A stretch of 64,000 nt of DNA from Setoptus koraiensis (taxonomy: Eukaryota > Animalia > Arthropoda): NCBI GenBank assembly GCA_048013815.1, contig CM106586.1, forward strand, positions 7,316,001 to 7,380,000, written 5' to 3'. The stretch's first letter is position 1, and each line of letters starts with the position of its first letter. Under the pieces are notes generated by a model, which saw only the letters and a program-made list of their open reading frames with translations, did not search any database and had not been told where the DNA came from. The translations under genes were made by a program, and so were the position numbers. Of this stretch, positions 5,372 through 60,100 are shown piece by piece.

Positions 5372-5410
5372 GCTAATCTGACAGCCAGATTAGCTGGCTG
5401 TCAGATTAGC
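5372..5410. repeat. Perfect inverted repeat, 17-bp arms, 5-nt loop
   Basis: gctaatctgacagccag-attag-ctggctgtcagattagc. Confidence 0.95.
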
Positions 5411-41300: not shown

Positions 41301-41645
41301 TCCTCCTATGTGGCTTAAACTGCATAACTTGCATCAAGAACAGTTCTAGTATCTACTTTCGTTTTCTCTTTTTCCACAGTCTGATGAAATTCTCGAGATA
41401 GATAAAAGTCAGGTCCACTTGGCTGCCGTTGATTCCTCTAGAGAACGGCGCCAATCGTTAAACAGGTAATTTCATTTTATGTACCTGTAGATAGATACAT
41501 CACTGACTATATTAACGGGCTAGTTTTGCTTCCCGGCAAGTTTAATGACGATTTATATGTCTAGCAGCAACACCACAATTAGCATTCATCAATTTAGATA
41601 TAGCAATAATTAAAATCAACAAGCAACTAAATTGATACCGGCAAG

Positions 41646-42764
41646 ATGCCTGTCATTCGTGTATCGAGACTTTATCTATCAATGGTTGCAATGTTGCTGG
41701 TGTTTGGTTGTGCCTCAATTGTGCAACAAGCCCGGTGTCAGAGACTCACTCAAGACATCTTGAGGCAGCCCAAACAACAGCAGCAACTACAGCAGCCGAC
41801 ACAGATACAAACTCCATCATCTTCGGTGACTTTACCTCCAAATTTTCAGCTGCCACCGGAACTAGCGCAACTAACACCTCAGCAATTGCAACAGTTGGCC
41901 CAACTGAGGGCTCTGCAATTGCAGCAGCAACAACAACAGCAACAACAGCAGCAGCAGCAACAACAACAACAACTTCAACAACAACAGCAACAACAGCAGC
42001 AACAACAACAACAGCCAACACCTTCGTCGTCGAGCCAGCAGGAGCTCAATCAGTTGAGTGCCCCTGGGCAATCGTATGCGCTTGGCGCACCAACAGCTCC
42101 TCAGGTGACCTCGTCCATGTCGGATCAATCTGATCGACGCGACCACGACGGATCTTATCATGAGGCCAACACTGAGCAAGAGGGAGTGAACTCGTCTGGG
42201 GACAATCAGTTCGGTAATAGCATTGGCAACAGGAATGCCAAACCTTCCGCTACTTCGACCCAGAGCTCGACTGCGCCTGCATCGGCCCCAGAATCTTCAG
42301 CGCCAGCCTCGGGAACTAGGTCGTCGGCACCTCAATCTGGCCCAACATTTGAAGTAAATTGGAACAAATGTCCACAATTGGAGCCGAGTGAAAGTGAAAA
42401 AAATAAAAAGACTCAGGTCATCACTAAATGCCTACAATCTGCGCCCATTCCAGCCAACCTAACTAGAGAGAACGTCGAAGCACATAGAGAGCAAATAGCC
42501 ACTTGTGCCTTGAAAGTAGAGGGTTGGTTCGACGATTCTGGAAACTATCGATACGAGAAGGCCGAAAACGAAATCAGGGGTAAGAAATTGGACAGTCAAA
42601 TAGAAATACAAGTATTGAAATTCCATATTGCATGCAAGGAAGAGGCAAGTTCGAAATTCCCTAGAGAGCAAAACAAACTTATAGATCAAGTTCAATTCTA
42701 TCAAGCTTGTATGGATTATTATATAAGTATCGCTTGTGAGATAGAAGTATCGGTAGACAGTTAG
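41646..42764 (+). CDS. Secreted protein: signal peptide, polyQ and S/T-rich linker, C-terminal six-cysteine helical domain resembling chelicerate odorant-binding-protein-like (OBPL) proteins
   Basis: Hydrophobic N-terminus (LYLSMVAMLLVFGCASIV). Cysteine spacing C-X19-C-X24-C-X42-C-X24-C-X8-C, with an OBP-like CALKVEGWFDDSGNY segment and terminal C-X8-C. The coding status is clear; the family call is by pattern only. Confidence 0.6.
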   Translation: MPVIRVSRLYLSMVAMLLVFGCASIVQQARCQRLTQDILRQPKQQQQLQQPTQIQTPSSSVTLPPNFQLPPELAQLTPQQLQQLAQLRALQLQQQQQQQQQQQQQQQQQLQQQQQQQQQQQQQPTPSSSSQQELNQLSAPGQSYALGAPTAPQVTSSMSDQSDRRDHDGSYHEANTEQEGVNSSGDNQFGNSIGNRNAKPSATSTQSSTAPASAPESSAPASGTRSSAPQSGPTFEVNWNKCPQLEPSESEKNKKTQVITKCLQSAPIPANLTRENVEAHREQIATCALKVEGWFDDSGNYRYEKAENEIRGKKLDSQIEIQVLKFHIACKEEASSKFPREQNKLIDQVQFYQACMDYYISIACEIEVSVDS

Positions 42765-42774
42765 ACTGTTGAAT
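42699..42774 (+). repeat. Direct repeat copy A (last codons, stop and start of 3' UTR of the OBP-like gene)
   Basis: 68 of 76 positions are identical to 46227-46301. Confidence 0.95.
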
Positions 42775-42891
42775 CTTAAAGCAGCTAACTTTAACAAGCA
42801 ATTGTATTAATGCAATCAAAACATCATATCAATCACTTGTCAAGTTCAGCAGACAATACAAGTTTTTACTAAAATGATATTATGTGTCAGA

Positions 42892-45800
42892 CTACAAACA
42901 ACTTATATCGTTTTCTTCTGGTTTGTATAATTTACCAAATTTAGCCATATAAATGTGCACAAATTCTTCCGCTTTTTGTCTGACCGCATCATTGCAAGTT
43001 AACTTGTCCAAAGTTTTACAGATTTTCAGTTCTTTTGTCATAACGGCGCCTGTTAATTTCTTGGCAAGAAACCTAAAGTCTTCTTTACTCGTGATTCGTG
43101 CTCGTTTGCAATCAGGCTTGTAGTAGTCTCGCAATTGTCTGACAATTGTTCGACTCATTTCTACCTTAAAGGCTTCCTGTATCTTTCTGGTATCCTTGGA
43201 TAGTGCATTATTGTCTGCATTCGGAGAATCTGACGCGGTATCCACAGATGCTGTATCGGCTGATGCAGCATCAGCACTTGATGGTGGCTTATCGTTGGTA
43301 ATCTGTGTCGTTTGCACAACTGTTTGCTCATCACATCTGGATGATTGTTTGGTAGTTGACGTCACAGTGACTGCAGCATTTTGCGTAGCAGCAGATCTGT
43401 CCAAGTTCAGTATCACAGTTTGGAGACGTTTTGTCTGACGATCAATAGTAACACTTGCAAACCAACTCTGACCGTCCGGTGTAGTATAATAAGATCCAGG
43501 GCAAGGGTATTCTTGATCCATCACTTGCTCAACGGTAAGCTGATCAGTCTTACTATTGTTAGGAAGAGAATCATAGTCACAAATGGATGCGGCCAACTTT
43601 TCATCCATGAAAGAGGCTTCGAGATCATTGGGATCACCGCCAGCTAAAACAATGACAGTTGGAATATTTGTAGGTTCAGGTATAATATCTTCTTCCATTG
43701 GGGGCTCATACAAATGTGAATCATAGTTTCCACCAACATCATAAATAACATCTTGATAAACTTGATCTTGGCTTTGGCTGCCCATAGGGGACAGCCAAGA
43801 GTTTTGTTGAAAATGGTTTTCATGAATCATGGGCAAGCCGGGAATTGCTGACTCAGATGTTGGAGGAACCGCTGCGACTAGAGGTTGGGCTGAGACATCT
43901 AGAATGTAGGGACTGTTATGACCCAAAGCCATGGCGGCTGCGGCGTTACCAGGAAATTGTTGATAAAGCGTTTGGTAGGTGTAAAGAGCGCCGTATTTTT
44001 GCCACCACTCCTGATAGTCTCTTTGGTAAACTTCCATCTCAAATTGATGCCTCCTTTCCTCCTTGCTGATTTTAGGTGGTGAGGGTGCCTCGACATTAGT
44101 TAGACTATCAAAGTGCCTCTTGTTTGTGGGATTTTCCCTTCCAGGAGCCGTGAGAGGTCCATATGATTTGAAAGGCGTCGTCCTGACGAAACGCTTGCTA
44201 CCGAATTTATCGTCTTCAAGCTTATTGGGGCTATCGTGTGCTTTTCTGTCTGCTTCCTTCTCATCCTCGTACCTCTTCTGACGCTCTAGCCTTGGTATCC
44301 TAAAAACCTCCTTGAGATCTTGCCATTTTCGTATCAATTTGGAGGCTAGCCCCCTTATATTAGGAGGTGGTGTTTGGGCTGCAGGCACAGGCAGTGATGA
44401 CGGGGGTGTAGATGGTGGGGGCGTGCAAGGTGGAGGGGTAGATGGTGGTGTAGACGGCTGAGCAGTTGGCTGAGTTACAGTTTTCTTTCCTTGGTTTGTA
44501 TTATTGCTAAGTAACTGCTGATCGGGTTTAGTAGTAGTGAAGGATTCGGCATTCCTTGGAGGTAGTTTAACGTCTTCATTCGACCATCTTTCGATGACAG
44601 ATAGTATCTTACTATCAGTCAAGAGATTTCTGTGAGGTATGGGCAATAGATCTAATAATTCAAGAATAGCAGCTTTGAGTGACGTGTCCTCAAGATCAGA
44701 CATCCAGATCCATAACAACTGCAAGCCATGGTAGTCCAGAAATAATTTTAGAAGTGTCTCATCTTTCGTGGCTTTGACTATATCAATTAATTTATGTCTA
44801 TTAGGAGCATCCTCCGCGCGATTCATTAGCCTACCTACTTCAATTACTTGTTGTCTATTTTTCAAACCTCCGGAATCAGATAATTTAATTATTTCTTCTT
44901 CTAAAGCTAGATCCTCAAATAGAAGACTATTCCTAATATCAATCTTGGATGATTTACTGATTTTATGATTTTCTTTATGTTCTGCATTTTTAATGCTTTG
45001 TTTAGATGATTTGCGTGATCCATTGAGAGTAATAGAGGACTCTCCAGTACCACCAATATATCCCCTACAAGAGGGAGCTTCACAATAACATTTTTGAGCC
45101 TTCTTACCGTATCTCTGAAACTGATAATCAAACGTAACTTCCTCACCTGCTTCAAGGTGTTTTTTGGTGAAAAAACCGATTCTGAGTTCACCATTGACGG
45201 TCCATTTTTGTGTCTCACAATTTGGCTCACAACTGTGATTTATAAACCTAGTCATATTGCCTTTGATAGTAGCGTCTATAATTTCATCACTACGCAACGC
45301 CATAAAATAATGGTGCTTGATCTTTTGTTTGGAGTACTTTTTTACCCTATGCTTAAATTCCTGAGGTTGTACAACCTCACCAACATACTCCATTATGAAT
45401 GCATTTGGTGGTAAACTAGTCATTGTGCGTAGACCCCAACCTTTTTTGTGTGTCTTGAATACTTCTACTTTGGCAGACTGGTGTTTCTGGAATCTTTTAT
45501 TAAGACAGTGATCACCAAGGGTACATCTATTGCCACATTCAATCATGAGCATTCTGTTTAAACAATCATCGGCGCATCCCATAATATTTCTAGATCGTTC
45601 CTCTCTGGTTAGTATACAATCACATACCATCCTCCTAGCCTCTTTTCTGCTACGAGATTGTAAATCCGTACGCTCAAATAGGTACAAATTTTCGACGATT
45701 TCCTCAAATGTTGGAGGTGGTGTCTGATGATGATTTTGGTCATGGTCATGAGGAGGATTTTGTTTTTGGTCAGAGGGAGGTAGCGGCGGCGCAAAATTAT

Positions 45801-46209
45801 GGTGGTTGTGATGATTCTGATGATGATTATGATTGTTATTAATATGATTGTGATGATGATGGTTAGCAGTATCAGAAGTATCATTCTTACTGGGGTCCAC
45901 TGATGAATTGTTGTTTTTAATAAAATTGATCAGGGTGGTATTCGTTGAATTGTTATTATTGTTACTGTTACTTTTGTCTTGTGTAGAGTTAATGTTATTA
46001 GCGATACTGTTGTAGCTATTACTATCAAAATTGTTGATACTATTACTACTACTTGTAGTAGGTAATGGACCAGTTAGACCAGCCAAAGAAGCAGAGGACG
46101 AAGAAGAAATATTATTACTATTGTAAGATACAGATTGGGATAGGCCACTCTCTAATTCGCTCTTCCTTCTCCATCTTGATTTAAGCTTCACCGATTCCAT
46201 GATGGCCAT
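42892..46209 (-). CDS. SETD2: Histone H3K36 methyltransferase SETD2/Set2, 1105 aa, single open reading frame
   Basis: AWS domain (CDC...GCADDCLNRMLMIECGNRCTLGDHCLNKRFQ), SET domain (KGWGLR...RFINHSCEPNCETQKWTVNGELRIGFF...DYQFQRYG), post-SET (CYCEAPSCRGYIGG) and C-terminal SRI domain (FKVEMSRTIVRQLRDYYKPDCK...KEDFRFLAKKLT...YMAKFG). Confidence 0.97.
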   Translation of the reverse strand: MAIMESVKLKSRWRRKSELESGLSQSVSYNSNNISSSSSASLAGLTGPLPTTSSSNSINNFDSNSYNSIANNINSTQDKSNSNNNNNSTNTTLINFIKNNNSSVDPSKNDTSDTANHHHHNHINNNHNHHQNHHNHHNFAPPLPPSDQKQNPPHDHDQNHHQTPPPTFEEIVENLYLFERTDLQSRSRKEARRMVCDCILTREERSRNIMGCADDCLNRMLMIECGNRCTLGDHCLNKRFQKHQSAKVEVFKTHKKGWGLRTMTSLPPNAFIMEYVGEVVQPQEFKHRVKKYSKQKIKHHYFMALRSDEIIDATIKGNMTRFINHSCEPNCETQKWTVNGELRIGFFTKKHLEAGEEVTFDYQFQRYGKKAQKCYCEAPSCRGYIGGTGESSITLNGSRKSSKQSIKNAEHKENHKISKSSKIDIRNSLLFEDLALEEEIIKLSDSGGLKNRQQVIEVGRLMNRAEDAPNRHKLIDIVKATKDETLLKLFLDYHGLQLLWIWMSDLEDTSLKAAILELLDLLPIPHRNLLTDSKILSVIERWSNEDVKLPPRNAESFTTTKPDQQLLSNNTNQGKKTVTQPTAQPSTPPSTPPPCTPPPSTPPSSLPVPAAQTPPPNIRGLASKLIRKWQDLKEVFRIPRLERQKRYEDEKEADRKAHDSPNKLEDDKFGSKRFVRTTPFKSYGPLTAPGRENPTNKRHFDSLTNVEAPSPPKISKEERRHQFEMEVYQRDYQEWWQKYGALYTYQTLYQQFPGNAAAAMALGHNSPYILDVSAQPLVAAVPPTSESAIPGLPMIHENHFQQNSWLSPMGSQSQDQVYQDVIYDVGGNYDSHLYEPPMEEDIIPEPTNIPTVIVLAGGDPNDLEASFMDEKLAASICDYDSLPNNSKTDQLTVEQVMDQEYPCPGSYYTTPDGQSWFASVTIDRQTKRLQTVILNLDRSAATQNAAVTVTSTTKQSSRCDEQTVVQTTQITNDKPPSSADAASADTASVDTASDSPNADNNALSKDTRKIQEAFKVEMSRTIVRQLRDYYKPDCKRARITSKEDFRFLAKKLTGAVMTKELKICKTLDKLTCNDAVRQKAEEFVHIYMAKFGKLYKPEENDISCL

Positions 46210-46226
46210 AGACAGGGTAGAATTTT

Positions 46227-46301
46227 TATCAAGCTCTTATGGATTATTAATAGGTATCGCTTGTGAGATAGAAGTATCAATAGACAGTTAGACTATTAAA
46301 T
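46227..46301 (+). repeat. Direct repeat copy B (degenerate copy of the OBP-like 3' end), just upstream of the SETD2 ATG
   Basis: 7 substitutions and a 1-nt deletion relative to 42699-42774; weaker similarity extends to 46208 versus 42681. Confidence 0.95.
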
Positions 46302-48034
46302 GATGATGTAGCAAACGATAATCAATAAATTTGTATGACATTCGCTGAGGATTTTCTTCATAAATATCTAAGTAGGATTGGTCGTATCTATCTTCCAGAC
46401 TGTGTAGAAATGTTAAATAATACATTCAAATATATATATATATCCAAGCTCGTTGTGCGTTTCGCGCAGCACCAAAAATACACACATACCCACAATTACT
46501 ATTTGTATTATACTGCGTGCGACTTTTTCTAAAACGATATTTCGAGTGCTTGAAAATTCCGCCAGGGGCGTGTTGGGCACACACGTAAAGCACACTGAAT
46601 CCATGAGTGTTACAATTAAATGTTCGATATTCCAAATCGATCCATGAAACACAGTAGTGAACAACAAAGTACAAAAACGTTTTGGACGCTAGGTGCGCAC
46701 CCAGTTTTGTCTGGCATATCAGGCTTCTACCCAAGTTGTTCGAACGAAACTGGCTGCTGCAAATAGAAAGCAAATTAGCGCCGCCCTATCGTATTTTTTC
46801 AATACTAAACCTGCCAGTGGAGAAAAGGTTGCATTGTATAGTCGAATAAAATAAAATGCGTTCGATGCTGTGAGAACAGTTTTTTTTCTGTGCAAAACAA
46901 AAATCAACTCTCGCTTTCTTCTATTTGCTCAAATACCCCTGCCTGGTCCTGTTGTGAACAAAACTTGTATGATCATCCGATGAGAAACCATTAGATTCAC
47001 GAGGGTACTGAACGCAGCCATGGGCATTTTGCCATATCATACCATTGAACCAACGAGCCAACTTTTACTCATGACTCATGTACAACCAATGGCCGTGCCA
47101 GACCATTGAACACTGCGTGTGCTTCAAAGCTTGAAATAAGTATGGCCACAGGGTGCATTCATACTCCACTGTGCGTGTGCACGAACGCCAGGGTACGCTT
47201 CACATGATGTGCACCCAAGAAAACTTTGCAAAAATACCCAATCGAATTGAGAATTCTCTTTAAAAGTCCCGCTCCGGAAGACACATGTTGACGCATGCGT
47301 TGTCTAACATCTCGCGCAATAAGTCGACTTTCTTGTCGTCTCTCTCCCTCCAACGCACTCTATAAGCTTTCTCGCTGTATCAGTGCTACCGCTGCCGCGA
47401 CGATGCTCCTGCTCCCTGCTCTTGGGGTATCTGGTGACTAATGCAGAAGGCAAAGCCAGTTCCTCGGTTCTGTACACATACACTCGCTTTAACAAACATT
47501 CGTCACCCTGGTGGACAGATTGAATTTATTTATGCGCAGAAGTACAAAACCGACATGAGCACTCGATATATGTGTGCTTTTTTTTGAAATCGGCGCTCAG
47601 TTCTACGCATATAATTCTCATTTTCTCTACTGGGGTGTCGAGTGTTTGTTGAAGCAGCTCCATGTAAGCATACACACACGCACACATACACCAACTCTGG
47701 TACACACGAACACACACACACTCAAACATACGGAACTCTGCCTTGGAGACACACGGACGCGCACACAAAATACTGTACTGTTGCGGTACAGCAGCGAATT
47801 GCTATCGCATAGGCACACATGCACATACATCCTTGCATACACATGCACACATTGATGAGCGAATTGCAGAACGCAAAATTCATATCACAACCACGTTATT
47901 AGACGATTACGGCCAAGATACACCAACACCAATACTTCAGTAATATTTAGTAATTAAAATATTTATATTAGTTACTTTAGTTAATCAATTACCAATTATT
48001 CATATATATATACATATATTCAGATTAATAAATC

Positions 48035-49814
48035 ATGAGCTACACCGGACCAGAAGAAGAGGCTACTGTAGCCGGCGAAGATGGACGCCCTAGAGATATG
48101 GACCCCGATGGTACAATTGTGTCAAATTGGCATGAGGTAGTCAATAGCTTCGATGACATGAACCTAAAAGAACCGCTACTCCGTGGTGTTTACGCTTACG
48201 GTTTCGAGAGACCATCGGCTATCCAGCAGCGTGCGATTAACCCTTGCATCAAAGGTTAGTTTTTGACCGCCGGACATCAAGTCTTCATTTTACCTATACA
48301 TCAAGAACTTAGCCCAATTTAGCCTAAGCTAATTCTTCTTTTTTACATCATCATCTCAACATACAGGCAATGATGTCATAGCGCAAGCTCAATCTGGTAC
48401 AGGAAAAACGGCAACATTCTCAATTGCTGTTCTTCAGAACATCGACACGAAAATAAGCCAGTGCCAAGCTCTTATATTGGCCCCTACTCGTGAATTGGCC
48501 CAACAGGTAAGATCCTAACAGATGTTTTCGGCCATCTCATACTCCTTCTGTCAAACGAAGGCGTGTCCGCATAGCCATGCTGGTTTTACGCATGCGTCTC
48601 CATTGAACCGTCGGAAGGGCGCGCACATGTTTCAAACCTAAAAGCAGCGTATGCTGCCTCAACTATTGGCATACTAAAATATTCCAATTCTTAATTTTTC
48701 ATACAGATCCAAAAGGTCGTCCTTGCATTAGGCGACTATCTAGGAGCCCAGTGTCATGCCTGCATCGGAGGTACCAAAGTTCAACATGACATTGATAAGC
48801 TTGCATTGGGTGTCCACATCGTTGTCGGTACACCAGGTAGAGTTTACGATATGATCCAGCGTAAAGTATTAAATCCTGCATATATCAAAATGTTTGTCCT
48901 CGACGAGGCAGATGAAATGTTATCACGTGGATTTAAGGATCAAATCTATGACGTGTTCAAGAACTTGCAAAACGATATTCAAGTCATCCTGTTATCGGCC
49001 ACCATGCCCGTTGAAGTACTTGAAGTCACCAAAAAATTTATGAGGGAACCCGTCCGAATTCTTGTTAAGAAGGAGGAACTCACTCTAGAGGGTATAAAAC
49101 AGTTCTACATCTTGATATCGCAAGAGGAGTGGAAATTCGACACACTTTGCGATTTATATGAAACCCTAACAATCACGCAAGCCGTCATCTTTTGTAATAC
49201 TAGAAGGAAAGTCGACTGGTTGGCGAAGCAGATGGAGATGAAGGACTTCACAGTGTCATCTATGGTAAGTAATTCGATATCTTTCGATCTCCACTTAAAA
49301 GCACTCACTATGAAACCTTTTCAATGGTTGTGTTGAGTCGTCGCAGTAGGAGTAAATAATATAGACTGCGTACCTGTGGGTGAGGAGAACTAAGACAATT
49401 CGGTGACTCCTCAAGGGTATGCTATACATTCCTTATGTAAATGATTTCATATCCGTCTAACGCTTTCACTTTTCATTCAAACTCCAAATCAAATCGCAGC
49501 ATGGAGAGATGGATCAGAAAGCTCGTGATGTTATCATGAAAGAATTTCGCAGTGGATCAAGTCGTGTATTAATCACAACAGACCTATTGGCTCGTGGTAT
49601 AGACGTTCAACAGGTATCTTTGGTTATTAACTACGATTTACCCAACAACCGCGAAAATTACATACATCGTATTGGTCGTGGAGGTCGTTTCGGTAGGAAA
49701 GGAGCAGCAATCAATTTTGTAACAGAGGACGATAAGAGGGCCCTTCAAGATATTGAACATTTTTACAACACGGTAGTTGAGGAGATGCCGAGCAACGTTG
49801 CTGATTTATTGTAA
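48035..49814 (+). CDS. EIF4A: Eukaryotic initiation factor 4A (DEAD-box helicase), 410 aa; exons 48035-48254, 48367-48506, 48707-49264, 49500-49814
   Basis: Q motif ([27 protein letters not shown]), [33 protein letters not shown] and [13 protein letters not shown]. All three introns are GT-AG and join in frame to 1233 nt. A probable 5' UTR intron ends at ttcag 48023, with a candidate donor gtaagc at 47664. Confidence 0.98.
48517..48630 (+). ncRNA. Candidate H/ACA snoRNA in eIF4A intron 2 (target not identified)
   Basis: H-box-like AAACGA at 48553-48558, then a hairpin closed by gcgtgtcc/gggcgcgc with an upper stem tggttt/gaaccg, ending in ACA (48625-48627). The 5' hairpin is unusually short. 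Confidence 0.35.
49289..49431 (+). ncRNA. SNORA21: H/ACA box snoRNA in eIF4A intron 3, double guide for two 28S rRNA PTC uridines (SNORA21/ACA21, snR10-type)
   Basis: Hairpin 1: stem ctccact/agtaggag, pockets AAAAGC (49297-302) and CGTCGC (49339-44), upper stem actca/tgagt, H box AAATAA (49354-59) 15 nt from the pocket; matches 28S GCGACG-U-C-GCUUUU. Hairpin 2: stem gcgtacc/ggtatgc, pockets GTGGGTG (49376-82) and CAA (49412-14), upper stem aggag/ctcct, ACA (49426-28) 14 nt from the pocket; matches 28S GAUUG-U-U-CACCCAC. The rRNA sequences and SNORA21 name are from recall. Confidence 0.85.
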
Positions 49815-50208
49815 TAGTGCGGATCATTAGGCATTTTTCAAATAATTCATATAAAGTATAGGAAGCGGGTACAGACTAGGCGCTTCCTGAAGGTACATAA
49901 AGAACTCATTTGAATCTGTCTAGGAGACATACAACAGACACCAATCATCTAACTAGCGAATATAGGAACCAAAATTAGTATTCAAAAAGTTACCACCATC
50001 TTGGGCAGTTCTCACGATTCGCAGTATTGTCTCCCATTGTTTCTGGATCATCCTACGAATCCAAACATTGTAACGATATTCAATATATATTGCTACAACA
50101 GAATAACAATAATTCCCTCTAAATTAAAGTTGATTGGTATCATCTTTTTTTATTCTATAACTATCACGTTCTCTGCTGTTTTTTTGATTTTACATGTGTT
50201 CTTCTATA

Positions 50209-50952
50209 TCAACCCGCCTTAATCAACAACCCTTTACCGGGAATGAGCTTCTCCGCTAAATAGTTGATTGCTAGCCTGTACTCTACTCCTTTACTATCAT
50301 CGAAGTCACAGTTTAGTAGGAGACTAATACACTTCGTCCAATAATGTCTGATGTGATACTTGGATGAACCAAAAGTAGCAACAACTGAAGGAGGTGTCTG
50401 AGAAGTTGCTAGGAGGGCGAAGAATTTCTCCAGAAATTGTACACCCAGCTGGAGGCACTTACTTTCGATGATCTCTCTTGGCGTGGCATTTGCATCGGTA
50501 TTGGCGGACGAAACTAAATCAGTTCTGTTGGTTGATGCAAATTTGATTTCGTAACAAACCTCAATGATCGAAATGAAGAAATCAAGCCATACCGGATTTG
50601 GCTTGTCGGAAATCTGTGATAGGAATCCTTCCTGTTCTAAACGCAGATACTCATTGAGCCTGAGAAGAATGTCGACTTTGTAAACTATGTCGTTAAGCGG
50701 CTGCACAAGATTTGGGATTTTTTTGTCCTTCAAATCAATATCATCGACCAAGTTGAGTCTACCAATAATGCGCTCTAGCGGCAAGCTTGTTAGAGTAGAC
50801 GAGTTCTCGAGTCCAATCTGGTGAAGCCTATTGAAGAGATGGTTGAAGTAATCGCCAGCGTCCAATCTGTCGACATCACAGAGGTCGCACGTGAATATCC
50901 GAGACTCTCTAATGACCATTTTGTAACAAAAGTAGTAAGGAACTGAGTTCAA
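50209..50952 (-). CDS. Uncharacterised protein, about 236-247 aa, with one N-terminal C2H2 (matrin/U1-like) zinc finger
   Basis: FTCDLCDVDRLDAGDYFNHLFNRLH (C-X2-C-X12-H-X5-H), then a complex helical-looking sequence; a long ORF in AT-rich DNA. Confidence 0.7.
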   Translation of the reverse strand: MNSVPYYFCYKMVIRESRIFTCDLCDVDRLDAGDYFNHLFNRLHQIGLENSSTLTSLPLERIIGRLNLVDDIDLKDKKIPNLVQPLNDIVYKVDILLRLNEYLRLEQEGFLSQISDKPNPVWLDFFISIIEVCYEIKFASTNRTDLVSSANTDANATPREIIESKCLQLGVQFLEKFFALLATSQTPPSVVATFGSSKYHIRHYWTKCISLLLNCDFDDSKGVEYRLAINYLAEKLIPGKGLLIKAG

Positions 50953-51210
50953 TGGTCGGAAAAAGAAGTCAAATCTCTTCTAATAATAAATTGTAAATGA
51001 ATATCTTGGTAACTTAGTCAGACTGTGTCGTCGTCAATGAATAACTCGCCTCTATCAGCGAACCACTGATTTCAAACCCAAAACCAGCGCGCAATTCGAT
51101 TTAGAAAAGTTGCACCAACTTAGTTACTAGTTGACAAGAACATGGTATTATAAATATTAAACTATTTAATTATCAACAATACAAACTGTAACAAAAAGAT
51201 AACCAATATA

Positions 51211-54033
51211 TCAACTAGAGTGAACCGTAATCGAATTCGTTATCAAGTTTCCTTTCACAATTATTCTGTCGATCAAATTATGTTTCATCTTGAATTGCAT
51301 GGATTTGAGTTCCGGATATGAAGTGGCTCTTCCATCGGTGATAACTGTGCTCTGATTAGATATTATGACTGATATTACTGTTAGACCATCTTGGAAAACT
51401 ATATCATTGAAATGTGATTCCCACTGACCGCGTCCAGCTATCTTCACAGCATTTTGCTTGATATCAGCCAACCTATATCCGTTAACTAGACTGGGTTGAA
51501 CAGCTTGTTGGAAAATAACATCACCAAGGAAAGTTTTAGGCCCATAGATTACTTGATTTCTACTGACAGATAGAATTCTGTCTAGAAATTGCTGAAGAGG
51601 AACAGAGTTGATGCTTATTGCATCAATATCGCATCTGATCTGACTGTTGTCCAACAACAAATTGTTGAATTTTAGTAGCTTATGATCGTTAGGATATTGT
51701 TGTGGCGCAGGGCGTAAATGTATACGGAACATATCAAACTGAACTATGTCTATACCATTTATGGCCTCTCTAGAGTACACTCGATTACTTATGAGATTCT
51801 TACGGACATCTACCCTTCCTACAAATGTCACTTTGCCAGTTATGCGCGCATTAGAGTGTCGCGTTAGGATATTTGAAAAAGGTATTCCATTAATCATGGA
51901 ATTTGTTTGATTAAGCAAAATTAATTGATCACCTATCTTATATGAATTCATCCTTTGCTCAACAGGTAGACCATTGATTTTAAAATGCTCAGATAAAACC
52001 CTGAGTAAGGCCATGAACTCTTGCGACTGGTGAAAGATTGGAAAGTTTCTCGGTTGTATATGGTCATGGAGAATTAAATGGTTCGTATTAAACCCACCAG
52101 TTGCATAAATAGGGTGGTTCTCAAATATCAATCGAGTGTTTACATATTGAGGATATCTATCAAGTCTGACCATGCTATTCATCCAATTGGGCACATGATT
52201 AATTGATGAGAAACTGCATTCAGAGATTTCCACAGGGCCATTGAATGATATCCTACCAAGGATCGGTGAGTCTAGTCTTGTACTCTCGTGACGAGTCAAT
52301 AAATCATCGATCCTCATTCCATTCAGTAGGCCTTGCCTATTATCACTCCTTTTCAAGAAGAGCTCATTAACTGTCAATGGTGATTTCAATAACCTAATGC
52401 CGTTTAGTGAATTAACAAATGAAGACTTGGTGACCAAGCTAGCAGCAGTGTCCACCGATTGGTCTAGATCCAATCTGTCGAAATTTCTATTGTCACTGGA
52501 CAAGGTTATTGCAACGGAGTCGATACCATTTAGGAATAGTAATTTACTAGGCTCAGCATAGGTTGTTACTGGATCATCATTCAAAACAGTTATCACCTCA
52601 CTAGGCAACGATATAGAACTGACACGACCTTGGGTCGAAATTTGATTAAACTGAGGTGATTGTAGGAATCTCTTTTGGTGCCTTATAAAGATTGGACTGT
52701 TTGAATCCAGCAAGTGTCGGGAAATTATGTCATTGGGGATGGACAAACCATTTAGGCTATCAGCGTCAAGTTGATGGTCGATCGTTACAGATGGCATGTT
52801 GTGATGATAATTAGTCCCTCTGCTTGATGTGAAAACGCCGGGAACAATCGGATCGAAACTGATTAGCGATCTTATATTTGCCGGCCTGTCTAATCTTACA
52901 ATTGATTGATCAATAAAGCTTCCGAAATCTCCCACACCATTGGCTTGGAGAGCATCAAGGCCATACATAAATCGTGACGAACCTACTAATACTACAGGTT
53001 GTGATATATGTTGAATCGGCGATGATCTGTAGTTGCCATTCATAAGGTTGTGACCTAGTTCTAAGCTAATCCATTTTGATGAGCCGTAATGATTACCAAG
53101 CTCGAGCACATTCCCGCTCATAGACATCAAATTGATTATGTCAAATTGGCCTTTGAAGATGAAATCTTGGTTCAATCTTGTAATATTGCCGTTTACCATT
53201 CGTTTCGTAGGAATGAGGTTCGATTTTGTCACAGGATTCACAATATCCTGTGTAAGTCTCAATCGATGGGCCCCATTAATCATGGGCTCGTCAATTAGGT
53301 GGGCATTGTGTACCATTGGTGTGAAAATATTGTGGATTCTTGATGGTGCTCTCGATAAAATCAGTGGTGTTGCTAAGGTCTGGTTTTCGCGAGTGGTCAT
53401 CATTCTGTTCACACTCAGAGGGTATAGACGATTGCAACAACCAGAGCGCAAGATGTTGTCGAATGTCGACCGATCGAATATTTTTGTTCCTTCAAAATAG
53501 AGCCTATTCTGTCGGTCGTAACGCGCAATTGGTGAGCTATCAAAGAAAACTCGCTTTATAACAGGGTTGATGTCCATTGAATTGATTCTATTCAACTCAA
53601 TTGAATTCCGGGCTTCAACGGATTGAATCCATGTGGGGGCGGTAAAACGCTTCTCTCCATTGACTTTCCTAAACCTATTCTTGTAGATATAACTGTTGGT
53701 GTCACCAAGCTTTCTTGCAGCTTCATTGTTCAACTCAGACACACGATGTCGAAATTGATTCAAGTAAAGACGAGTGCTATTGACCATTTTCCAAGCGTCA
53801 GTGGGATCCATGAGAACTCCTCGATGTATGATAAGCTCATTGAAAGATATTGGTCCTGTAAGGACAATATTCCCGCCAGGCGGGACAGCGGAGTCTAATA
53901 TACTTTTGAGATATTGGTGTTCGCGCATATAATTTGCGAGGCGGTAGCCAATATCGACGCGCCAATGGTCGTAACTTCTTTGAGCCAGACATGCATCCAA
54001 AAGAACGCTCCATATAAGAAAAAATAAAAAAAT
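51211..54033 (-). CDS. Terminal 940-codon exon of a secreted beta-repeat protein resembling the arthropod Nasrat/Polehole/Closca eggshell family
   Basis: Acceptor tatccag| at 54034 with branch point CTAATC at 54060-55. The exon begins IFLFFLIWSVLLDACLA (signal-peptide core with no Met). Repeats include INGIPFSNILTRHSNARITGKVTF, LNGMRIDDLLTRH...ILGRISF and INSVPLQQFLDRILSVSRNQVIYGPKTF. The coding status is strong; the family call is tentative. Confidence 0.6.
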   Translation of the reverse strand: MFLFFLIWSVLLDACLAQRSYDHWRVDIGYRLANYMREHQYLKSILDSAVPPGGNIVLTGPISFNELIIHRGVLMDPTDAWKMVNSTRLYLNQFRHRVSELNNEAARKLGDTNSYIYKNRFRKVNGEKRFTAPTWIQSVEARNSIELNRINSMDINPVIKRVFFDSSPIARYDRQNRLYFEGTKIFDRSTFDNILRSGCCNRLYPLSVNRMMTTRENQTLATPLILSRAPSRIHNIFTPMVHNAHLIDEPMINGAHRLRLTQDIVNPVTKSNLIPTKRMVNGNITRLNQDFIFKGQFDIINLMSMSGNVLELGNHYGSSKWISLELGHNLMNGNYRSSPIQHISQPVVLVGSSRFMYGLDALQANGVGDFGSFIDQSIVRLDRPANIRSLISFDPIVPGVFTSSRGTNYHHNMPSVTIDHQLDADSLNGLSIPNDIISRHLLDSNSPIFIRHQKRFLQSPQFNQISTQGRVSSISLPSEVITVLNDDPVTTYAEPSKLLFLNGIDSVAITLSSDNRNFDRLDLDQSVDTAASLVTKSSFVNSLNGIRLLKSPLTVNELFLKRSDNRQGLLNGMRIDDLLTRHESTRLDSPILGRISFNGPVEISECSFSSINHVPNWMNSMVRLDRYPQYVNTRLIFENHPIYATGGFNTNHLILHDHIQPRNFPIFHQSQEFMALLRVLSEHFKINGLPVEQRMNSYKIGDQLILLNQTNSMINGIPFSNILTRHSNARITGKVTFVGRVDVRKNLISNRVYSREAINGIDIVQFDMFRIHLRPAPQQYPNDHKLLKFNNLLLDNSQIRCDIDAISINSVPLQQFLDRILSVSRNQVIYGPKTFLGDVIFQQAVQPSLVNGYRLADIKQNAVKIAGRGQWESHFNDIVFQDGLTVISVIISNQSTVITDGRATSYPELKSMQFKMKHNLIDRIIVKGNLITNSITVHSS

Positions 54034-54139
54034 CTGGATACAGAATAAATGAATGATTAGATAGTTGAATTTTTCAGCATGATGGTTTCAGTGTGAAGGT
54101 GGTTTCAGGCAGGGCAATGTGCCAAGATAATGGGCCGAG

Positions 54140-54780
54140 AACATGTGCGTCCAAAAACAGCATGGCCATGCGAATACGCCTCTGTTTGACAGCAAATGCG
54201 TGGAATATCTGTGAGTGGACTTACTTGTCGGGCCAATTCACGAGTAGGGGCCAATGTAAGAGCTTGGCACTGGCTTATTTTCGTGTCGATGTTCCGAAGA
54301 ACAACAGTTGAGAATGTTGCCGTTTTTCCTGTGCCAGATTGAGCTTGCGCTATAACATCTTTGCCTGTATGTTGAGATGATGATGTAAAAAAGAAGAATT
54401 AGCTTAGGCTAAGTTCTTGACGTATAGGTAAAATGAAGACTTGATGTCCGGCGGTCAAAAACTAACCTCTGATGCAAGGGTCAATCACACGCTTCTGGAT
54501 GGCTGGTGGGCGTCCATCTTGGCCGCCCCCGACCGCAGCCCGTTCCTCTGGTCCGGTGTAGCTCATGATTTATTAATCTGAATATATGTATATATATATG
54601 AATAATTGGTAATTGACTAACTAGAGTAACTAATATAAATATTTTAATTACTAAATATCACTGAAGTATTGGTGTTGGTGTGTCTTGGCCGTAATGGTCT
54701 AATCACGTTGTTGTGATTAAATTGTGCGTTCTGCGATTCGCTCATCAATGCGTGCATGTGTATGCAAGGATGTGTGCGCA
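54140..54780 (-). other. Inverted partial duplicate of eIF4A (5' flank, exon 1 at 54566-54467, intron 1, exon 2 at 54364-54225, start of intron 2); candidate 5' exons of a chimeric gene
   Basis: The reverse complement aligns to about 47821-48631. The exons encode [80 protein letters not shown] with no stop, and GT-AG sites are intact. Confidence 0.95.
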
Positions 54781-54906
54781 ACTTACGCAACACGAGTGCG
54801 CCGACGGGAGGGCGGGATTGTCGCAAACCGCAACTGTTTGCGCGCTCTACCCGCGCTACTGGACACTTTGTTCATATCGCAGCGTAGCGGGATTTGTGGA
54901 ACAAAG

Positions 54907-54988
54907 TTTATATGTGCCACCATGGTGGCACAATTCGTTTAGCAGATATTACTGGAGCTAGCTTTACGATTCAAAGCACGAGTATAAA
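54907..54988. promoter_or_regulatory. Candidate bidirectional core promoter: divergent TATAAA boxes flanking a perfect 20-bp palindrome
   Basis: TATAAA on the minus strand at 54912-54907, palindrome tgtgccaccatggtggcaca at 54913-54932, TATAAA on the plus strand at 54983-54988. It lies between divergently oriented genes. Confidence 0.4.
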
Positions 54989-55817
54989 CCGTTTCTAGCC
55001 GAACATTAACCCGAGAGAACAACGACAGAGACTTGTTGCACATGGCACATCCAGCCGGATCATATCATTTTCGCCCTGATCATTTTCGCCGCACAATGAT
55101 GCCTCGAAATGCTTTGGATCAGCCAGGGCGACTGGCACGAAGAACGCTTTCCACAGTTACCCAAGCCGATCGACAGAGGGTGCTGATGCTCGTCCGTTAT
55201 TGGTTTATGTGTGTACCGGTGCCAGCCTAATCTGCAGCCGCCCGTCGCGCGGCAGTAGCGATCCCCAACGCGAACATGGGACCAATGGACCGTGGGTCCC
55301 CCTCGCAAGTCTCAAACGTGGAGTGTGTCGATTCCAAGTTTTCCTCAATTCTATAACAGATCCGGGGGAAGGGGCGAGAGCGAAACTTGGGCTCGTTTCT
55401 GCGAGGCCCAGCAGCAACAACAAATCGAACATTGGCTCCATCTCTGGTTCGACGAATGAAAGAAGGGCAACGGGGAGATAATGTGGGGGAAACAGCACGA
55501 CAAGTTGTTTCGTCTGCGCACACAACTCTATGCCATAGACTCTATGGCATAGACTCTATGGTGTGTGTTATAATAAGTGTGTGCGCGCGCGTCGCGATAT
55601 GCGCACAAGTCATGCGTCGTTTGGGATGTTTAGTTTTTAATTTTTGTGCCAGTCGCAACTTGTCAAAACTTGATCAAATGCAACCCAAACTCGCTGTTTG
55701 TTACAACGATTCGCACATATAGAACAGTAAGCCACCAGTTTACACCACACAATTACCACACAAGCATACATCAAATCACAACACTTCTTTTTCTGGCAAG
55801 TTAGACCAATCAAGAAT

Positions 55818-57182
55818 ATGAAGAAAATCATGAGTCAAAGTGAGAGTCAGCCCATAGTGAAAAAGAAGAAAGTTAAACACGAGAAACCGTCCTATAGTTA
55901 CAACGCACTCATTATGATGGCCATCAAGTCGTCGCCACAGAAGAGATTGACATTGAACGGCATCTATGAGTACATCATAAGCAACTACCCATATTACAGA
56001 GACAACAAACAGGGCTGGCAAAACTCAATCAGACACAATCTGAGCCTAAACAAGTGCTTTGTAAAAGTGGCAAGACACTACGATGACCCAGGCAAGGGCA
56101 ACTACTGGATGTTGGATCCGTGCTCGTCAGAGGAAGTGTTTATTGGCGGCTCAACAGGTAAACTAAGAAGAAAGAACACATCGTCCTCGAGGAACAGGCT
56201 TGCGGCCGCATTTAGGCGCTCGCTGCTGGTCAACAGCCTCGGCTTTAACGGTCCCGTGGCAAAGGCCGCCGCTCAATTGGGCCAGCTGATACCCCCACCG
56301 CACATGCAAAAATTCCAAAATAATTATCATCATCAATCAGGCAATCACCCCATGATGGGCACCTCATCTCACCTAGCGGCCACGCCAGTGGTGGCACCAG
56401 CAGTTCAAGCGTCCATTGGCGTCGGATCGACAGCCCCGAGAAACACTACAAACGGTGCAACGCCAGCTAACGCACCAGCGCAACAGCATCAAAATGTTAT
56501 AGGCGCGCTCGCTAATTTACCAGCCACCAGACAACCGTTGCCACGCAACAACAATTTGGGCTCGTGCATACCTAGCTTGAATCATCACCACCAATCACAG
56601 TCACTGACTGGACAGCCTTTATCATTGTTTGGCCTGCCGTTAGTGTCACAACCGCAACCGCAACCACCACCGCAACAGCAACAACAACCACAAGCTGGCC
56701 AACAGCAGCAGCAGCCTATAAGTCTGCGACAGCAGCATCAGCTTCAGCAACAGCAATTTCTCAATGAATTGTTACAACACCATTTAAGACAACTGCAATT
56801 CCACCAACAGCACGCCAGCCACCACCACCAACAGCAACAACAACAACATCACCAGCACCACCATCAACAGCAACTGCAGTTGCAGCTACAGCTTCAATTG
56901 CAGCAGCATCATCAGCAGCAGCGCCAACAACAACTACAACAACACCAACAAGCTTTGAAGCACCACTACGCAATCAATACTAATGACAATGACAATGATG
57001 ATATCGCAATGAAACATCGCAACCAAAAAGTCCATTCACCGAACCGTCATCACGACGAGCACGACCAGGCGTCAAAAATCGAAATAGCAGCAACCAAATT
57101 AAACGAAGGTCAATCAAATGATAATAGGAAGGCCAGCACAACTAATAAATCATCATTTGCCATAGACAATTTACTTAGTTGA
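55818..57182 (+). CDS. FOXG: Forkhead transcription factor FoxG (sloppy-paired/FOXG1 class), 454 aa
   Basis: Forkhead domain [31 protein letters not shown]...[36 protein letters not shown], the FoxG-diagnostic [12 protein letters not shown], a Q/H-rich tract and a terminal eh1 motif FAIDNLL. The N-terminus may lack an upstream exon. Confidence 0.95.
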
Positions 57183-60100
57183 TCAACACACATACACACG
57201 CACACAGCTCGCTCTATTGAGCTCACTCATGATCGTGATTGCATCATTAAATGTTTGATGATGGTGGCCGGTGATGATGCCAAACGCCAAATGGCACACA
57301 ATGCATGTATTTCAATTGTAAAACATCATTATTAATCATAATTGTAAATATAAATATACATAAATATATATAAATACATGTTAATGCACACAGAGATGAT
57401 AGGATGTTTGTGAGTGTCAAATACACTAAGACTCGATAGTTTTTCATTCATTCATTTGTTCGTTGGCCGCAAATTTAAACCAATCTGTCGTATGACAATT
57501 TGAACTCTAATGACTTTATATACGATCGCATGATCATTTAAAACCGCCAGCTCATTGAGAGCATTGTTTCACTGGATGCGTTCGAGAGACAAGAGTAACG
57601 GACGTTTATAGGTTCGCTTGGCTTGTTATTCGCACACAAATGATACAATTAGTGTTGGCATATACACGTCATTGATTTGCTAGCAACAAGCGGTAATGGT
57701 GTGCGTCTGGGGTGCTCGAGAGGGCCACTTTTGCCAGCACAAAAAGACAACTCAAGCCGTTTCACTGAATCGACATCAAAAGCTGCCAGACACATTGTTG
57801 TCTGTTGTTTTCATGTTGAATCGTTGTATACAACGACAACAACAACAACGACGATTCTATCGATAGCATCGGGCTGTGTTTTTGATCGTCATCGTAAGTG
57901 GTTGATGTTACTTCCTTTTACAAAGTGTTTGCAGATCGTTTTACTAATGGGTGCTTATGATGATCTCATTATAGTACACAAATGGACAATAACATGTATC
58001 GCATCAACAACAACAAACAATGTTTTATGTTGCTGCTGTCATTCTCGTGTTCAGCTACGCCATGATGGCTGTTGACAAAAGCCACAACCAATTGGTGCAC
58101 GGATATATCTAACGCGATTGTTAGCGTGCTTCATCATGATGGTTCCATATATGGGCTATATGACGATTAGCAAAGCCATTTATCAGAAAGAGGAAGAGCA
58201 GCAATCTATATATATATTCAACGGCGGCTATTTGTATGCTGTTTGTTCCTGCTAATAGGGGCATGCGACCAAAATTCGCAGATGCTCCTATTGCAAATTG
58301 AGTCATTGCAGTAAAGAGAATAGCCGGCCAACGGATAGTGGCGGCGGCGCTATCGGAATATTCAAAATAGTATGACAATTGTCACTTTCTTTACCACAAC
58401 ACCACTGTCGTTGGACAACAATGACAGTTGATGCTCTCAAAGTTGAATCCCCCTATTGGTAGCTCGTGGCAGCTGAGCTGTTGATCAATTACGGCCAATG
58501 GTCAAGTACCGGCGCTTATGAGGCCGACGTTATGTGTTTAAAAGGCGGTTATCGTATCTCTGCGGCGTTAGGATTGTTCATTTCACAATGACAATTGGAA
58601 CGTTTCTATTAATAACCGCGCGTTGTTTTGCAGTGTGGTATATGGCAACACACTCACACATATCTGTTTAACAATTGTATATAGTTGTAATTTGACCGAC
58701 TCACTCTGTTCAGCAGGCCAAACTGACCACTGCCAACCATAACTGACATACACACAAACACCACGATATGCATGACCGTATCACGCGTTAACACCGACGA
58801 GATATGCGATACAACAACAACGGCATCAGTATCAACACCGGCAAACATGACAACAAACTAGCTCTGTCATCTTTGCTGCTTGACCATCATTAGCGTGCTC
58901 ACTCGGGTACATGTCCATGCCGACGCCTTTATGGATGCCGTTTGATCGCCCTCAACTGAGCCTTGTGACCGCCGGCAACAATGCTGGCTCTAGAAAGCAA
59001 ATCTATATTTTTGTCGTGACATCTAGTTGATATAGCTGTCACGACAAATGAATTTGCCGACCACGAAACATATACGAGCAAAGAGCAAAAGGGGCCAGCC
59101 GCGGCCACATCCAACAACAGAGTTGTGCTGTCACTGCTGACACTGTTGTCACCCCGTGCCGTTTCGGTCAGAAAATCAATTAGCTGCATTGGCCCACGTC
59201 GTCATGGCTGGCCGGTTAGGGCCCCAATTCTCAGGCTCCGTTGTAAGATCGGTTTTTGCCGAACGGATAGTTTGTTGGGGGATGGTTGCGCTGCCTCGAG
59301 TGGACAATTGCGAGATATTCTAAGAAAAAAAAATCCTTTTAAATCTGGCGCCGCTGCGCGCACTTTTCATTACCGGGCTCACCAGACGAACGTGGGCGAC
59401 TTGAAATTCGGTTGAGCGCCCTAAAAGCGCCTCTGTCCCATGGTGCCCGCATCGCATGCCGGAGAAATGGAAAAAGAATCGATATTATTTTATGTTTTTT
59501 ATTATTATTATTGGCATTATATAACAAATGGACGCAAGCATAACACTGCCATATCTGCAATTCTGCCAAATGTCGCGGCGGGTGATTGGGGAACACAAGC
59601 AAATGCCGCCTGTCCCCCGCCACGCCACAGTGAAGATCGAGAGAGAGAGAGAGCCTTGAGTAATTTGATAGTAATTCCGAAATTGTCCACTACCACCAAC
59701 TGTCCAACTGTAAACCTGGTCATGTGACTGCAATCAAGCCGTGTGATTGAAATGATGGCGCGCGATGAAGCCGCCGCCGCCGCGTGATCCACGACCGACG
59801 AAACGACAATCAGCAGCCGTCAAGTTTGCCAGCCGGCCGGCCGATATCAGGTGATGAATTTGCATTACAAAATATTGACACATGTGAACCTGTTGCTTTG
59901 TGTGTCGCTGTGTGTAGGACAGGTGAGCACAGGTACAACTTTGTATCAAACGCCAGCAAAACAATGATACCTGGATACCGGCGCAATGTGTACCGATCAG
60001 CAAATGGCAAACATTTAAACCTGACATCTATTGTGAACAGCATTTATGTGCCAGCCAACGTCCAACTGGCATGCAAGCAACACCAACTGACGGCTGCCCA

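Follow-up and report, generated by a model that had tools for sequence, protein, structure and literature searches.

The window, a 64,000-nucleotide stretch of Setoptus koraiensis contig CM106586.1, carries an intact eIF4A gene on the plus strand together with an inverted partial copy of it. The parent coding sequence (48035..49814) consists of four exons (48035-48254, 48367-48506, 48707-49264 and 49500-49814) and its 410-residue translation is a full DEAD-box eIF4A; introns 1 and 2 lie at 48255-48366 and 48507-48706. SETD2 (42892-46209, minus strand) stands head-to-head with this gene, a pairing also found at an outgroup locus (L005). The partial copy occupies 54780-54034 on the minus strand and lies directly 5' of a 940-codon open reading frame (ORF) plus stop codon (51211..54033, minus strand), which, judging from its homologues, encodes a secreted, repeat-containing protein of an unnamed family. 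Between eIF4A and this ORF is a conserved gene of 237 residues (50209..50922, minus strand), which has 87% amino acid identity to its orthologue in a second species (SRR33593474, called species 2 below) with a dN/dS of 0.06, and a weak homologue of which adjoins eIF4A in L005. This gene provides context only and is not part of the chimera.

The two arms of the inverted repeat (47820-48511 and 54220-54780) are 92-95% complementary. By blastn the homology spans 47820-48592 versus 54780-54146, and past 48592 a weaker similarity of parent and copy (z ~3) reaches the acceptor of intron 2. Taken with the alignment, these bounds place the duplicated parental segment at 47820..48706 (plus strand), which comprises the 3' 205 nt of a putative 5'-UTR intron, exon 1 with its ATG at 48035, intron 1, exon 2 and intron 2. 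In the copy (all minus strand) the 3' part of the putative leader intron (54578..54780, acceptor AG at 54579-54578) is 93.6% identical to the parent with indels of -1 and -1. Copied exon 1 (54467..54577) contains 11 nt of leader, an ATG at 54566 and 100 nt of coding sequence (54566..54467, 33 codons plus 1 nt) versus 220 nt in the parent; the net loss of 120 nt is in frame, residues from R20 up to GFER are gone, the aligned part is 86.6% identical and the exon ends in phase 1 like that of the parent. Copied intron 1 (54365..54466, 102 nt, GTTAGT...ACAG) is 99% identical with one 10-nt deletion, and copied exon 2 (54225..54364, 140 nt), which encodes AQSGTGKT and PTRELA and ends in phase 0, has neither an indel nor a stop relative to the parent, from which it differs by 6 non-synonymous and 3 synonymous changes (9 in total), among them AAA for AAT at codon 2 and ACT GTT for ATT GCT. 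Copied intron 2 (54034..54224, 191 nt, GTAAGT...TCTAATC...ATCCAG), homologous to the parental intron 2 (86.5% identity, many indels), now precedes the 940-codon exon. At the outer edge of the duplicated segment is a GTAAGT (54781..54786), a putative donor of a new non-coding first exon.

Because the copy retains intron 1, intron 2 and part of the leader intron, it is a DNA-level duplicate and we rejected a processed pseudogene or retrocopy. Blastn detected no homology between the upstream flanks of parent and copy beyond 47820/54780, and an Rfam scan of 46000-56500 (E up to 0.1) gave no match. Capture of the eIF4A promoter was also rejected: the first homologous position, 47820/54780, falls within the putative leader intron, and it is the parent that has the ancestral SETD2/eIF4A flank. 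An origin by staggered-break inversion was likewise unsupported, as it needs the copy's flank to be the ancestral eIF4A promoter, but L005 shows that the parent's SETD2/eIF4A flank is the ancestral one.

An independent low-depth DNA-like run (X2) gave contigs colinear with the window across the junction of ORF, intron 2 and exon 2 (53631-54288) and again from 54784 outward. The X2 contigs leave a hole at 54289-54783 and Logan contigs break exactly at the repeat, as might be seen with a mis-assembled inverted duplicate. However, independent contigs span the junctions of unique and repeat sequence, and species 2 has the same structure on a single Logan contig that begins and ends in the same inverted repeat. 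The duplicate is thus not an artefact of a single assembly, a possibility that the first-pass annotation of the window had raised. Nor does the ORF behave as a startless pseudogene: it is under purifying selection, with a dN/dS of 0.13-0.18 at a dS of ~0.7-1.0 against the species-2 orthologue and 2.8 kb free of stops in both species. Hence, we regard an artefact or a dead locus as extremely improbable.

The 940-codon ORF opens with IFLFFLIWSVLLDACLA, followed directly by QRS. Its first Met is residue 36, and no in-frame ATG, GTG or TTG was found between the upstream stop and 54000. In homologues P0002, P0003, P0005, P0024 and P0009 a Met, an n-region and an h/c-region immediately precede QRS or QDS in a single ORF, and a species-2 paralogue (L003, ATG at 744) is built likewise; ahead of the conserved QRS..HW motif, this paralogue and all of the more distant homologues carry a Met of their own and a normal signal peptide. 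The window gene and its species-2 orthologue keep only the h/c-region (hydrophobic core plus cleavage region), and the species-2 orthologue lacks the Met36 of the window. This comparison indicates that the recipient gene lost its own Met and n-region, and identifies the first 17 codons of the big exon (53983..54033, minus strand) as the ancestral h- and c-regions. IFLFFLIWSVLL plus DACLA/Q has the form of an h-region and a c-region with small residues at -3/-1 and aligns with the signal peptides of the homologues; in species 2 the changes in these codons are hydrophobic-for-hydrophobic. As the ORF has no usable start yet is under purifying selection, it must therefore be translated through an upstream spliced exon.

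A protein search with the full-length query matched only the species-2 orthologue, a search with the N-terminal 200 residues found nothing and no protein fragment of the chimeric gene from its own species was found in the protein collections. No Pfam family matched the 940-residue protein or its close homologues. Assignment to the EPTP/EAR-repeat proteins was rejected, since the protein lacks the EPTP domain (PF03736), which occurs only in distant relatives (P0010, P0014 and P0016), beside repeats resembling residues ~710-920. AlphaFold2 gave pLDDT values of 26 (2 sequences) and 33 (13 sequences), too low to bear out the beta-repeat fold named in the first-pass annotation, and a PDB profile search and ESM Atlas features (scores at most 0.75) gave no usable assignment for the 940-residue protein.

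The copy is on the same strand as the recipient and the splice phases are compatible, the exon 2 donor CAA/GTAAGT being phase 0 (54225/54224) and followed by a phase-0 acceptor AG at 54034/54033. Upon joining exon 1, exon 2 and the ORF, the frame is open for 1020 codons and gives 1020 residues with a single terminal stop. Of eIF4A, the translation retains only counterparts of parts of exons 1-2: motifs I and Ia remain, most of the Q-motif region is gone and nothing is left from motif Ib onward; the chimera lacks the full motif set of a DEAD-box eIF4A (Q, I, Ia, Ib, II (DEAD), III, IV, V and VI, in two RecA-like domains). IFLFFLIWSVLLDACLA is the sole strongly hydrophobic segment of the predicted product and the hydrophobic core falls at residues 81-92; the classical N-terminal Met plus short charged n-region is not found. 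The first-pass annotation had described much of this architecture: a signal-peptide core whose first Met lies downstream of it, an inverted exon 2 copy 191 nt upstream with a phase-0 donor, a 100-nt exon 1 that lost 120 nt in frame, stop-free copied exons and a product of about 1020 residues, the 6 non-synonymous and 3 synonymous changes of exon 2, and a GTAAGT at 54786-54781 with an AG ending at 54578. These features were all recovered. An exact search of metagenome contigs for the spliced junction of exon 2 and the big exon gave 0 matches. Three oligo-dT/polyA runs (X22, X25 and X26), chosen by the species label of runs holding eIF4A exon 3, gave 0 reads on 50000-55900, the organism evidently being absent from these runs.

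Examination of the N-terminal region of the species-2 orthologue, as the first-pass annotation had advised, gave the same arrangement: an eIF4A exon 2 copy, a phase-0 donor, a 155-nt intron and an AG at the same place. The comparison at the copy covers the 69 nt of exon 2 that are visible, then the intron and the ORF, and these 69 nt are stop-free, with a phase-0 end. LFLFFLLW of species 2 is directly preceded by an in-frame TAG, whose AG is the acceptor. Therefore, without splicing the conserved hydrophobic codons cannot be translated. In both species it is eIF4A intron 2 that precedes the ORF, so the natural donor for this intron is the phase-0 one of copied exon 2.

These data bear on where translation of a chimeric transcript would begin. 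Introns near the 5' end generally raise expression, and the eIF4A residues are poorly conserved. Hence, the eIF4A part could be a 5' leader with expression-aiding introns, the start being a near-cognate codon or a product of re-initiation. However, exon 2 has no in-frame ATG (its only ATG opens a 3-codon ORF) and the species-2 big exon begins with a CTT codon that in the genome is preceded by TAG. Moreover, near-cognate codons in frame first occur within or beyond the hydrophobic core, and their use would destroy a signal peptide whose protein sequence is conserved. We therefore consider such a start improbable.

Divergence at 4-fold sites between the window and species 2 is 0.69 for the chimera ORF and 0.77 for the neighbouring gene, which indicates that the fusion is old and maintained, and predates a species split at a 4-fold divergence of ~0.7. 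The first-pass annotation had proposed the birth of a chimeric gene by exon capture and had viewed the locus as a snapshot of the process. The homologues and species 2 favor the first element, the model of an in-frame eIF4A ATG and exons, whereas the second fails because the arrangement is shared across a 4-fold divergence of ~0.7. Copied exon 2 of species 2 has an in-frame deletion (-18) that removed motif Ia (PTRELA), whereas in the window it is the Q-motif region that was deleted. As the two species deleted different helicase motifs, it would seem that the reading frame matters, not helicase function. Indels specific to the copy are divisible by three in the exons (net -120 in window exon 1 and -18 in species-2 exon 2), whereas the unambiguous non-coding ones are -1, -1 and -10; this in-frame argument comprises only two clearly independent events, for a chance of ~1 in 9. 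The chimera thus appears to be maintained by selection, which is relaxed on the eIF4A-derived residues themselves. Given an arrangement that is old and conserved in a second species, the locus is therefore very probably a working hybrid gene. A search of metagenome contigs with the two-species alignment gave 0 related loci, and a search for the copied exon 1 of species 2 via its forkhead neighbour returned best forkhead matches from other, more distant species.

Mismatches between copy and parent are unevenly distributed, with 22/237 in the exons versus 1/102 in intron 1 (Fisher p=0.004). Two species-specific sites are common to copy and parent, and copy-parent divergence is 1-7% versus a species divergence of ~0.7. 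Gene conversion appears to maintain the likeness of copy and parent, a reading that draws on few informative sites (2-3 against 1) plus the divergence levels. Islands of divergence that persist under gene conversion have been discussed as a sign of selection (PMC3728101). Recurrent conversion from a functional parent could be enough to preserve splice sites and an open frame even if the copy were dead, and the exon 2 changes are nearly neutral, as they would be for a pseudo-exon too.

The near-neutral substitutions of exon 2, the signs of concerted evolution and the ~1 kb of unexplained sequence upstream (54787-55817) could also fit an eIF4A copy that is a non-coding relic in the first intron or leader. 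Another upstream exon would then supply the ATG and n-region, the eIF4A exons would be skipped and conversion rather than selection would keep them. However, the intron before the ORF is wholly eIF4A-derived and the homologues have no intron there, so the extra upstream exon becomes a further invention. The candidate exon that ends at the 54786 donor is phase 2 from its own ATG and gives stops if joined to 54033. In addition, the copy-specific indels are in frame within the exons but not within the introns, and conversion leaves unexplained why the exons are more divergent than intron 1. On this evidence, we consider a non-coding relic unlikely.

We favor as the likely explanation an established chimeric gene on the minus strand in which the eIF4A-derived ATG and two exons are spliced in frame to the 940-codon exon, and we infer its transcription, splicing, start-codon use and targeting as follows. 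An inverted DNA-level duplication would have reproduced the 5' portion of eIF4A that runs from a point within the putative leader intron through intron 2, and the copy would have landed ~5.3 kb away. There it would have joined directly to the opening codons of a neighbouring secreted-protein gene with a single exon, a gene that lost its own ATG and n-region. Transcription would start from a non-eIF4A promoter somewhere in 54577-55800, the 5' end being either a new leader exon that uses the GTAAGT at 54786 or the result of initiation inside the former intron. Translation would begin at the eIF4A-derived ATG at 54566, with exon 1 (33 codons plus 1 nt) and exon 2 joined to the 940-codon exon by removal of both copied introns. 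The predicted 1020-residue precursor would consist of an 80-residue eIF4A relic, the signal-peptide core (residues 81-97) and the mature protein from QRSYDHW. The relic is no helicase and would act as start codon and open-frame spacer. Conversion from the parent would keep the 5' part of the copy eIF4A-like, and the copy-specific in-frame exon changes would persist.

The hydrophobic core is most likely an internal or long signal sequence that would be cleaved after CLA; otherwise, it may be a signal anchor. It is unusual for a signal-peptide core to follow an 80-residue extension, and targeting might suffer from it. Long signal peptides exist, for example viral glycoprotein leaders of 50-150 residues. 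The predicted product resembles these in having a hydrophobic core and a small-residue cleavage site (C-L-A/Q) ~80 residues from the predicted N-terminus, but here the remnant of a cytosolic helicase forms the extension, and targeting and cleavage are putative.

Chimeric genes made by partial DNA duplication are known; Sdic and similar genes of Drosophila are of this DNA-level kind. In Drosophila chimeric genes that arose by partial DNA duplication or illegitimate recombination (e.g., Hun Hunaphu, PMC1463047), as at this locus, an intron-retaining partial copy gives a neighbour a new 5' end while the parent remains intact. Here, however, an old secreted-protein gene received the graft and lost nothing but its ATG and n-region. 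The donor is a housekeeping helicase, the donated fragment has no obvious function as a protein, and the duplication is inverted and only ~5 kb away. The present chimera, whose expression is putative, also is old (4-fold divergence ~0.7) and seems still to exchange sequence with its parent. Primate L/M opsins are paralogues homogenised by conversion with selected islands of divergence. The GOT1 paralogues in Tigriopus (PMC3728101), which also combine conversion with selected islands, provide a parallel to a copied intron 99% identical to the parent and exons 87-94% identical, although here conversion is deduced from the few informative sites and divergence levels given above.

If transcripts confirm the chimera, it would be a clean and datable example of a gene surviving the loss of its start codon with a borrowed one, the borrowed part being two exons and two introns of a neighbouring housekeeping gene still exchanging sequence with its parent. 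A signal peptide then could tolerate or exploit an 80-residue foreign extension, and frame continuity alone could be a selected property of captured exons, different helicase motifs having been deleted, both in frame. A broader and rather doubtful proposal is that the locus is one case of a recurrent, genome-wide remodelling in a compact mite lineage, in which short inverted duplications graft a neighbour's start codon, first exons and introns onto a gene and conversion with the parent then preserves the graft over long periods; the 80-residue pre-sequence might then add regulation (a membrane-anchored or slowly targeted precursor) rather than be a mere spacer. If the chimera is real, gene-model pipelines will get such loci wrong and call a helicase-domain protein, or else a truncated ORF beside an eIF4A pseudogene. 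Should the transcript include an upstream ATG at ~54874, that codon would start an overlapping upstream ORF.

The intact parent eIF4A gene lies on the plus strand (410 aa; ATG 48035; coding exons 48035-48254, 48367-48506, 48707-49264 and 49500-49814). A repeat finder paired 47820-48511 of this gene with 54220-54780 as inverted arms that are 92-95% complementary. Alignment together with blastn put the limits of homology at 47820-48592 and 54780-54146, and fainter copy-parent similarity (z about 3 versus shuffles) reached to ~13 nt from an AG at 54034. Given these bounds, the minus-strand copy runs from part of the leader intron through intron 2. It comprises the 3' 203 nt of the putative eIF4A leader intron (93.6% identity to the parent; copy indels -1 and -1), the acceptor and 11 nt of leader, a start codon (ATG 54566) in a context identical to that of the parent, exon 1 with 100 coding nt versus 220 in the parent (86.6%; +3, -120 and -3), intron 1 of 102 nt (99.0%; -10), exon 2 of 140 nt (93.6%; no indels; six non-synonymous and three synonymous differences) and intron 2 of 191 nt (86.5%; many indels). 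The two copied introns are absent from the eIF4A gene of outgroup contig L005, as residues 13-306 are encoded there by a single unbroken ORF (4748-6298, minus), a lineage-specific gain or loss.

A 940-codon open frame (54033-51211, minus), the first residues of which are IFLFFLIWSVLLDACLAQRS, follows the AG immediately. None of ATG, GTG and TTG occurs in frame before 54000, and the first Met is residue 36, which is Arg in species 2, a second species known from Logan contigs. The more distant homologues P0002, P0003, P0005, P0024 and P0009 are each encoded by one ORF, opening with Met and a brief n-region and continuing through a hydrophobic core to a cleavage site of small residues, which a conserved QRS..HW(K/R).D directly follows, and P0006 has its own Met and hydrophobic leader. 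A species 2 paralogue (L003 744-3914; 1057 aa, about 27-31% identity to the 940-aa protein) begins at an ATG of its own with an ordinary signal peptide of the same layout, MTLFTILLLLLLFISQEILA followed directly by QDS; the genome of the window probably has a paralogue too, outside the window. Only the last 17 signal-peptide residues remain in the window and in species 2, hence the loss amounts to the Met plus at least about three residues. In species 2 the codon preceding LFLFFLLW is TAG, the AG of which is the acceptor. The hydrophobic codons of the two species differ by five replacements, all hydrophobic for hydrophobic, which argues that these codons are translated, and this is possible only by splicing from upstream.

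The intron preceding the ORF is eIF4A intron 2 in both species, because its donor and first ~100 nt have clear homology to parent intron 2, the homology in species 2 extends through GGGCGCGCACA.GTTC..AACCC, and the last 75 nt in the window align to both parental introns (z about 3). Branch-like motifs are found 20-30 nt 5' of the AG (TCTAATC in the window, TACTAAA in species 2), and the splice phases match, copied exon 2 ending in phase 0 at its donor and the 940-codon exon beginning in phase 0. As copied exon 2 contains no in-frame ATG, only exon 1 (ATG 54566) or sequence further upstream can supply the start. Exon 1, exon 2 and the 940-codon exon together give 1020 codons with one stop, the terminal one. 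All that the first-pass annotation had seen directly, namely the startless ORF, the inverted eIF4A copy, the shortened in-frame exon 1 and the open joined frame, was borne out.

The structure is real DNA. Contigs of X2, an independent low-depth, DNA-like run, match 50006-54288 and 54784-55900 of the window colinearly; one of these extends from the ORF through the intron and 64 nt into copied exon 2, and the sole gap in coverage is the high-identity repeat itself. Among 5.8 billion clusters the 940-aa protein had a single close homologue, P0001 of species 2 (78% identity). The P0001 gene lies on a 5.8-kb Logan contig, L001, with the gene order of the window: the 940-aa gene, a conserved 237-aa gene (50209-50922, minus, in the window) and convergent eIF4A. 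An identical 30-nt piece of eIF4A exon 2 stands at either end of L001, in opposite orientation, and thus the inverted repeat of the window also delimits this contig.

The locus had been proposed to be a snapshot of gene birth, a view that the divergence from species 2 contradicts. At 4-fold degenerate sites the divergence was 0.69 for the 940-codon gene, 0.77 for its 237-aa neighbour and 0.13 for eIF4A. The 940-codon ORF is stop-free in both species with a dN/dS of 0.13-0.18. By these comparisons the fusion is older than this deep split, and the gene has remained functional ever since. Where a duplication predates a split of ~0.7 substitutions per neutral site, unconstrained copy sequence would be expected to differ from the parent by far more than the 1-7% found. 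Within exon 2, two sites are common to copy and parent within each species, none is common to the two copies, and nearly all singletons are on the copies. Our reading of this pattern is that gene conversion acts in the 5' portion of the repeat and fades in intron 2. Conversion by itself could make a dead copy appear intact, and this is the main caveat to the chimeric-gene reading. Copy-parent mismatches number 22/237 in the exons versus 1/102 in the intervening intron (p=0.004). Copied exon 2 of species 2 has lost PTRELA through an 18-nt in-frame deletion, and the exon 1 deletion in the window removed most of the Q-motif region. The loss of different helicase motifs in the two species argues that in the chimeric gene the eIF4A residues are dispensable as helicase, but that the frame is required. 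The exon indels are multiples of three whereas clear non-coding indels are not, a pattern with a chance probability of about 1 in 9 (counted conservatively as two independent exon events).

In the 1020-aa product residues 81-92 are the sole strongly hydrophobic stretch. This core would act as an internal or long signal sequence cut after CLA97 to give a homologue-like mature start, the alternative being a signal anchor. The remainder belongs to an unnamed secreted-protein family having recurring (L/V/I)NG(I/L/M)..(D) motifs, for which an exhaustive HMMER search gave about ten further members (25-31% identity), and which is distantly related to the repeats of large EPTP-domain proteins of spider and amphioxus. 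Pfam, PDB and Atlas searches with the 940-aa protein gave nothing firm, and two AlphaFold models were both unusable, so that the 'beta-repeat' name given to the protein is putative. Three RNA runs, the species label of which is evidently mismatched to the source organism, had 0 reads on the locus; the spliced exon 2/940-codon-exon junction had 0 matches in metagenome contigs, and a search for protein fragments of the chimera found none. On the comparative evidence we consider the chimeric gene probable, with its expression a prediction.

eIF4A and its non-coding parts evolve much more slowly than the neighbouring genes (4-fold-site divergence 0.13 versus 0.69-0.77; window 48707-50200 versus L001 4300-5550). 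The window and species 2 share 87-90% identity in introns 2 and 3 (intron 3, 49265-49499, 89.8%) and 94.8% in the 390 nt 3' of the stop. An Rfam scan of 46000-56500, intron 3 included, gave no match at E up to 0.1.

The ATG and introns of eIF4A were copied but its promoter was not, as blastn found no homology between the copy and parent flanks upstream of 47820/54780. SETD2 and eIF4A are head-to-head both in L005 and in the window (SETD2 42892-46209, minus), and therefore the ancestral promoter stays with the parent, so that the chimera must be transcribed from a ~1-kb region that also lies 5' of the divergent forkhead gene at 55818. A GTAAGT at 54786 coincides exactly with the limit of the duplicated segment and is a candidate donor of a new leader exon, and an ATG at about 54874 would, if transcribed, create an overlapping upstream ORF. 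The chimera is thus old, not nascent, and without the eIF4A promoter.

In L005 a weak homologue of the 237-aa gene is convergent with eIF4A and a forkhead gene directly follows SETD2; neither the 940-aa gene nor the eIF4A copy is present at that locus. Comparison of window 40000-57200 with L005 showed the SETD2/eIF4A/237-aa-gene block to be inverted relative to forkhead in the window, with the 940-aa gene and the eIF4A copy at the forkhead-side junction. This altered gene order places the copy close to the breakpoint of an old rearrangement. The SETD2 ORF is flanked on both sides by a 72-nt direct repeat (82% identical; 42723-42794 and 46250-46321). The expected promoter region contains a perfect 20-nt palindrome, TGTGCCACCATGGTGGCACA (54913-54932, ~130 nt upstream of the GTAAGT at 54786), which may be a factor-binding site. 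Past a (TG)n tract at about 55547-55561, X2 word depth rises from about 8 to 240-310 toward and into the forkhead 5' end (55547-55900), which could reflect a collapsed simple repeat, or else sequence that is repeated or shared with a contaminant. The best named match of the forkhead gene is from the eriophyoid mite Fragariocoptes setiger.
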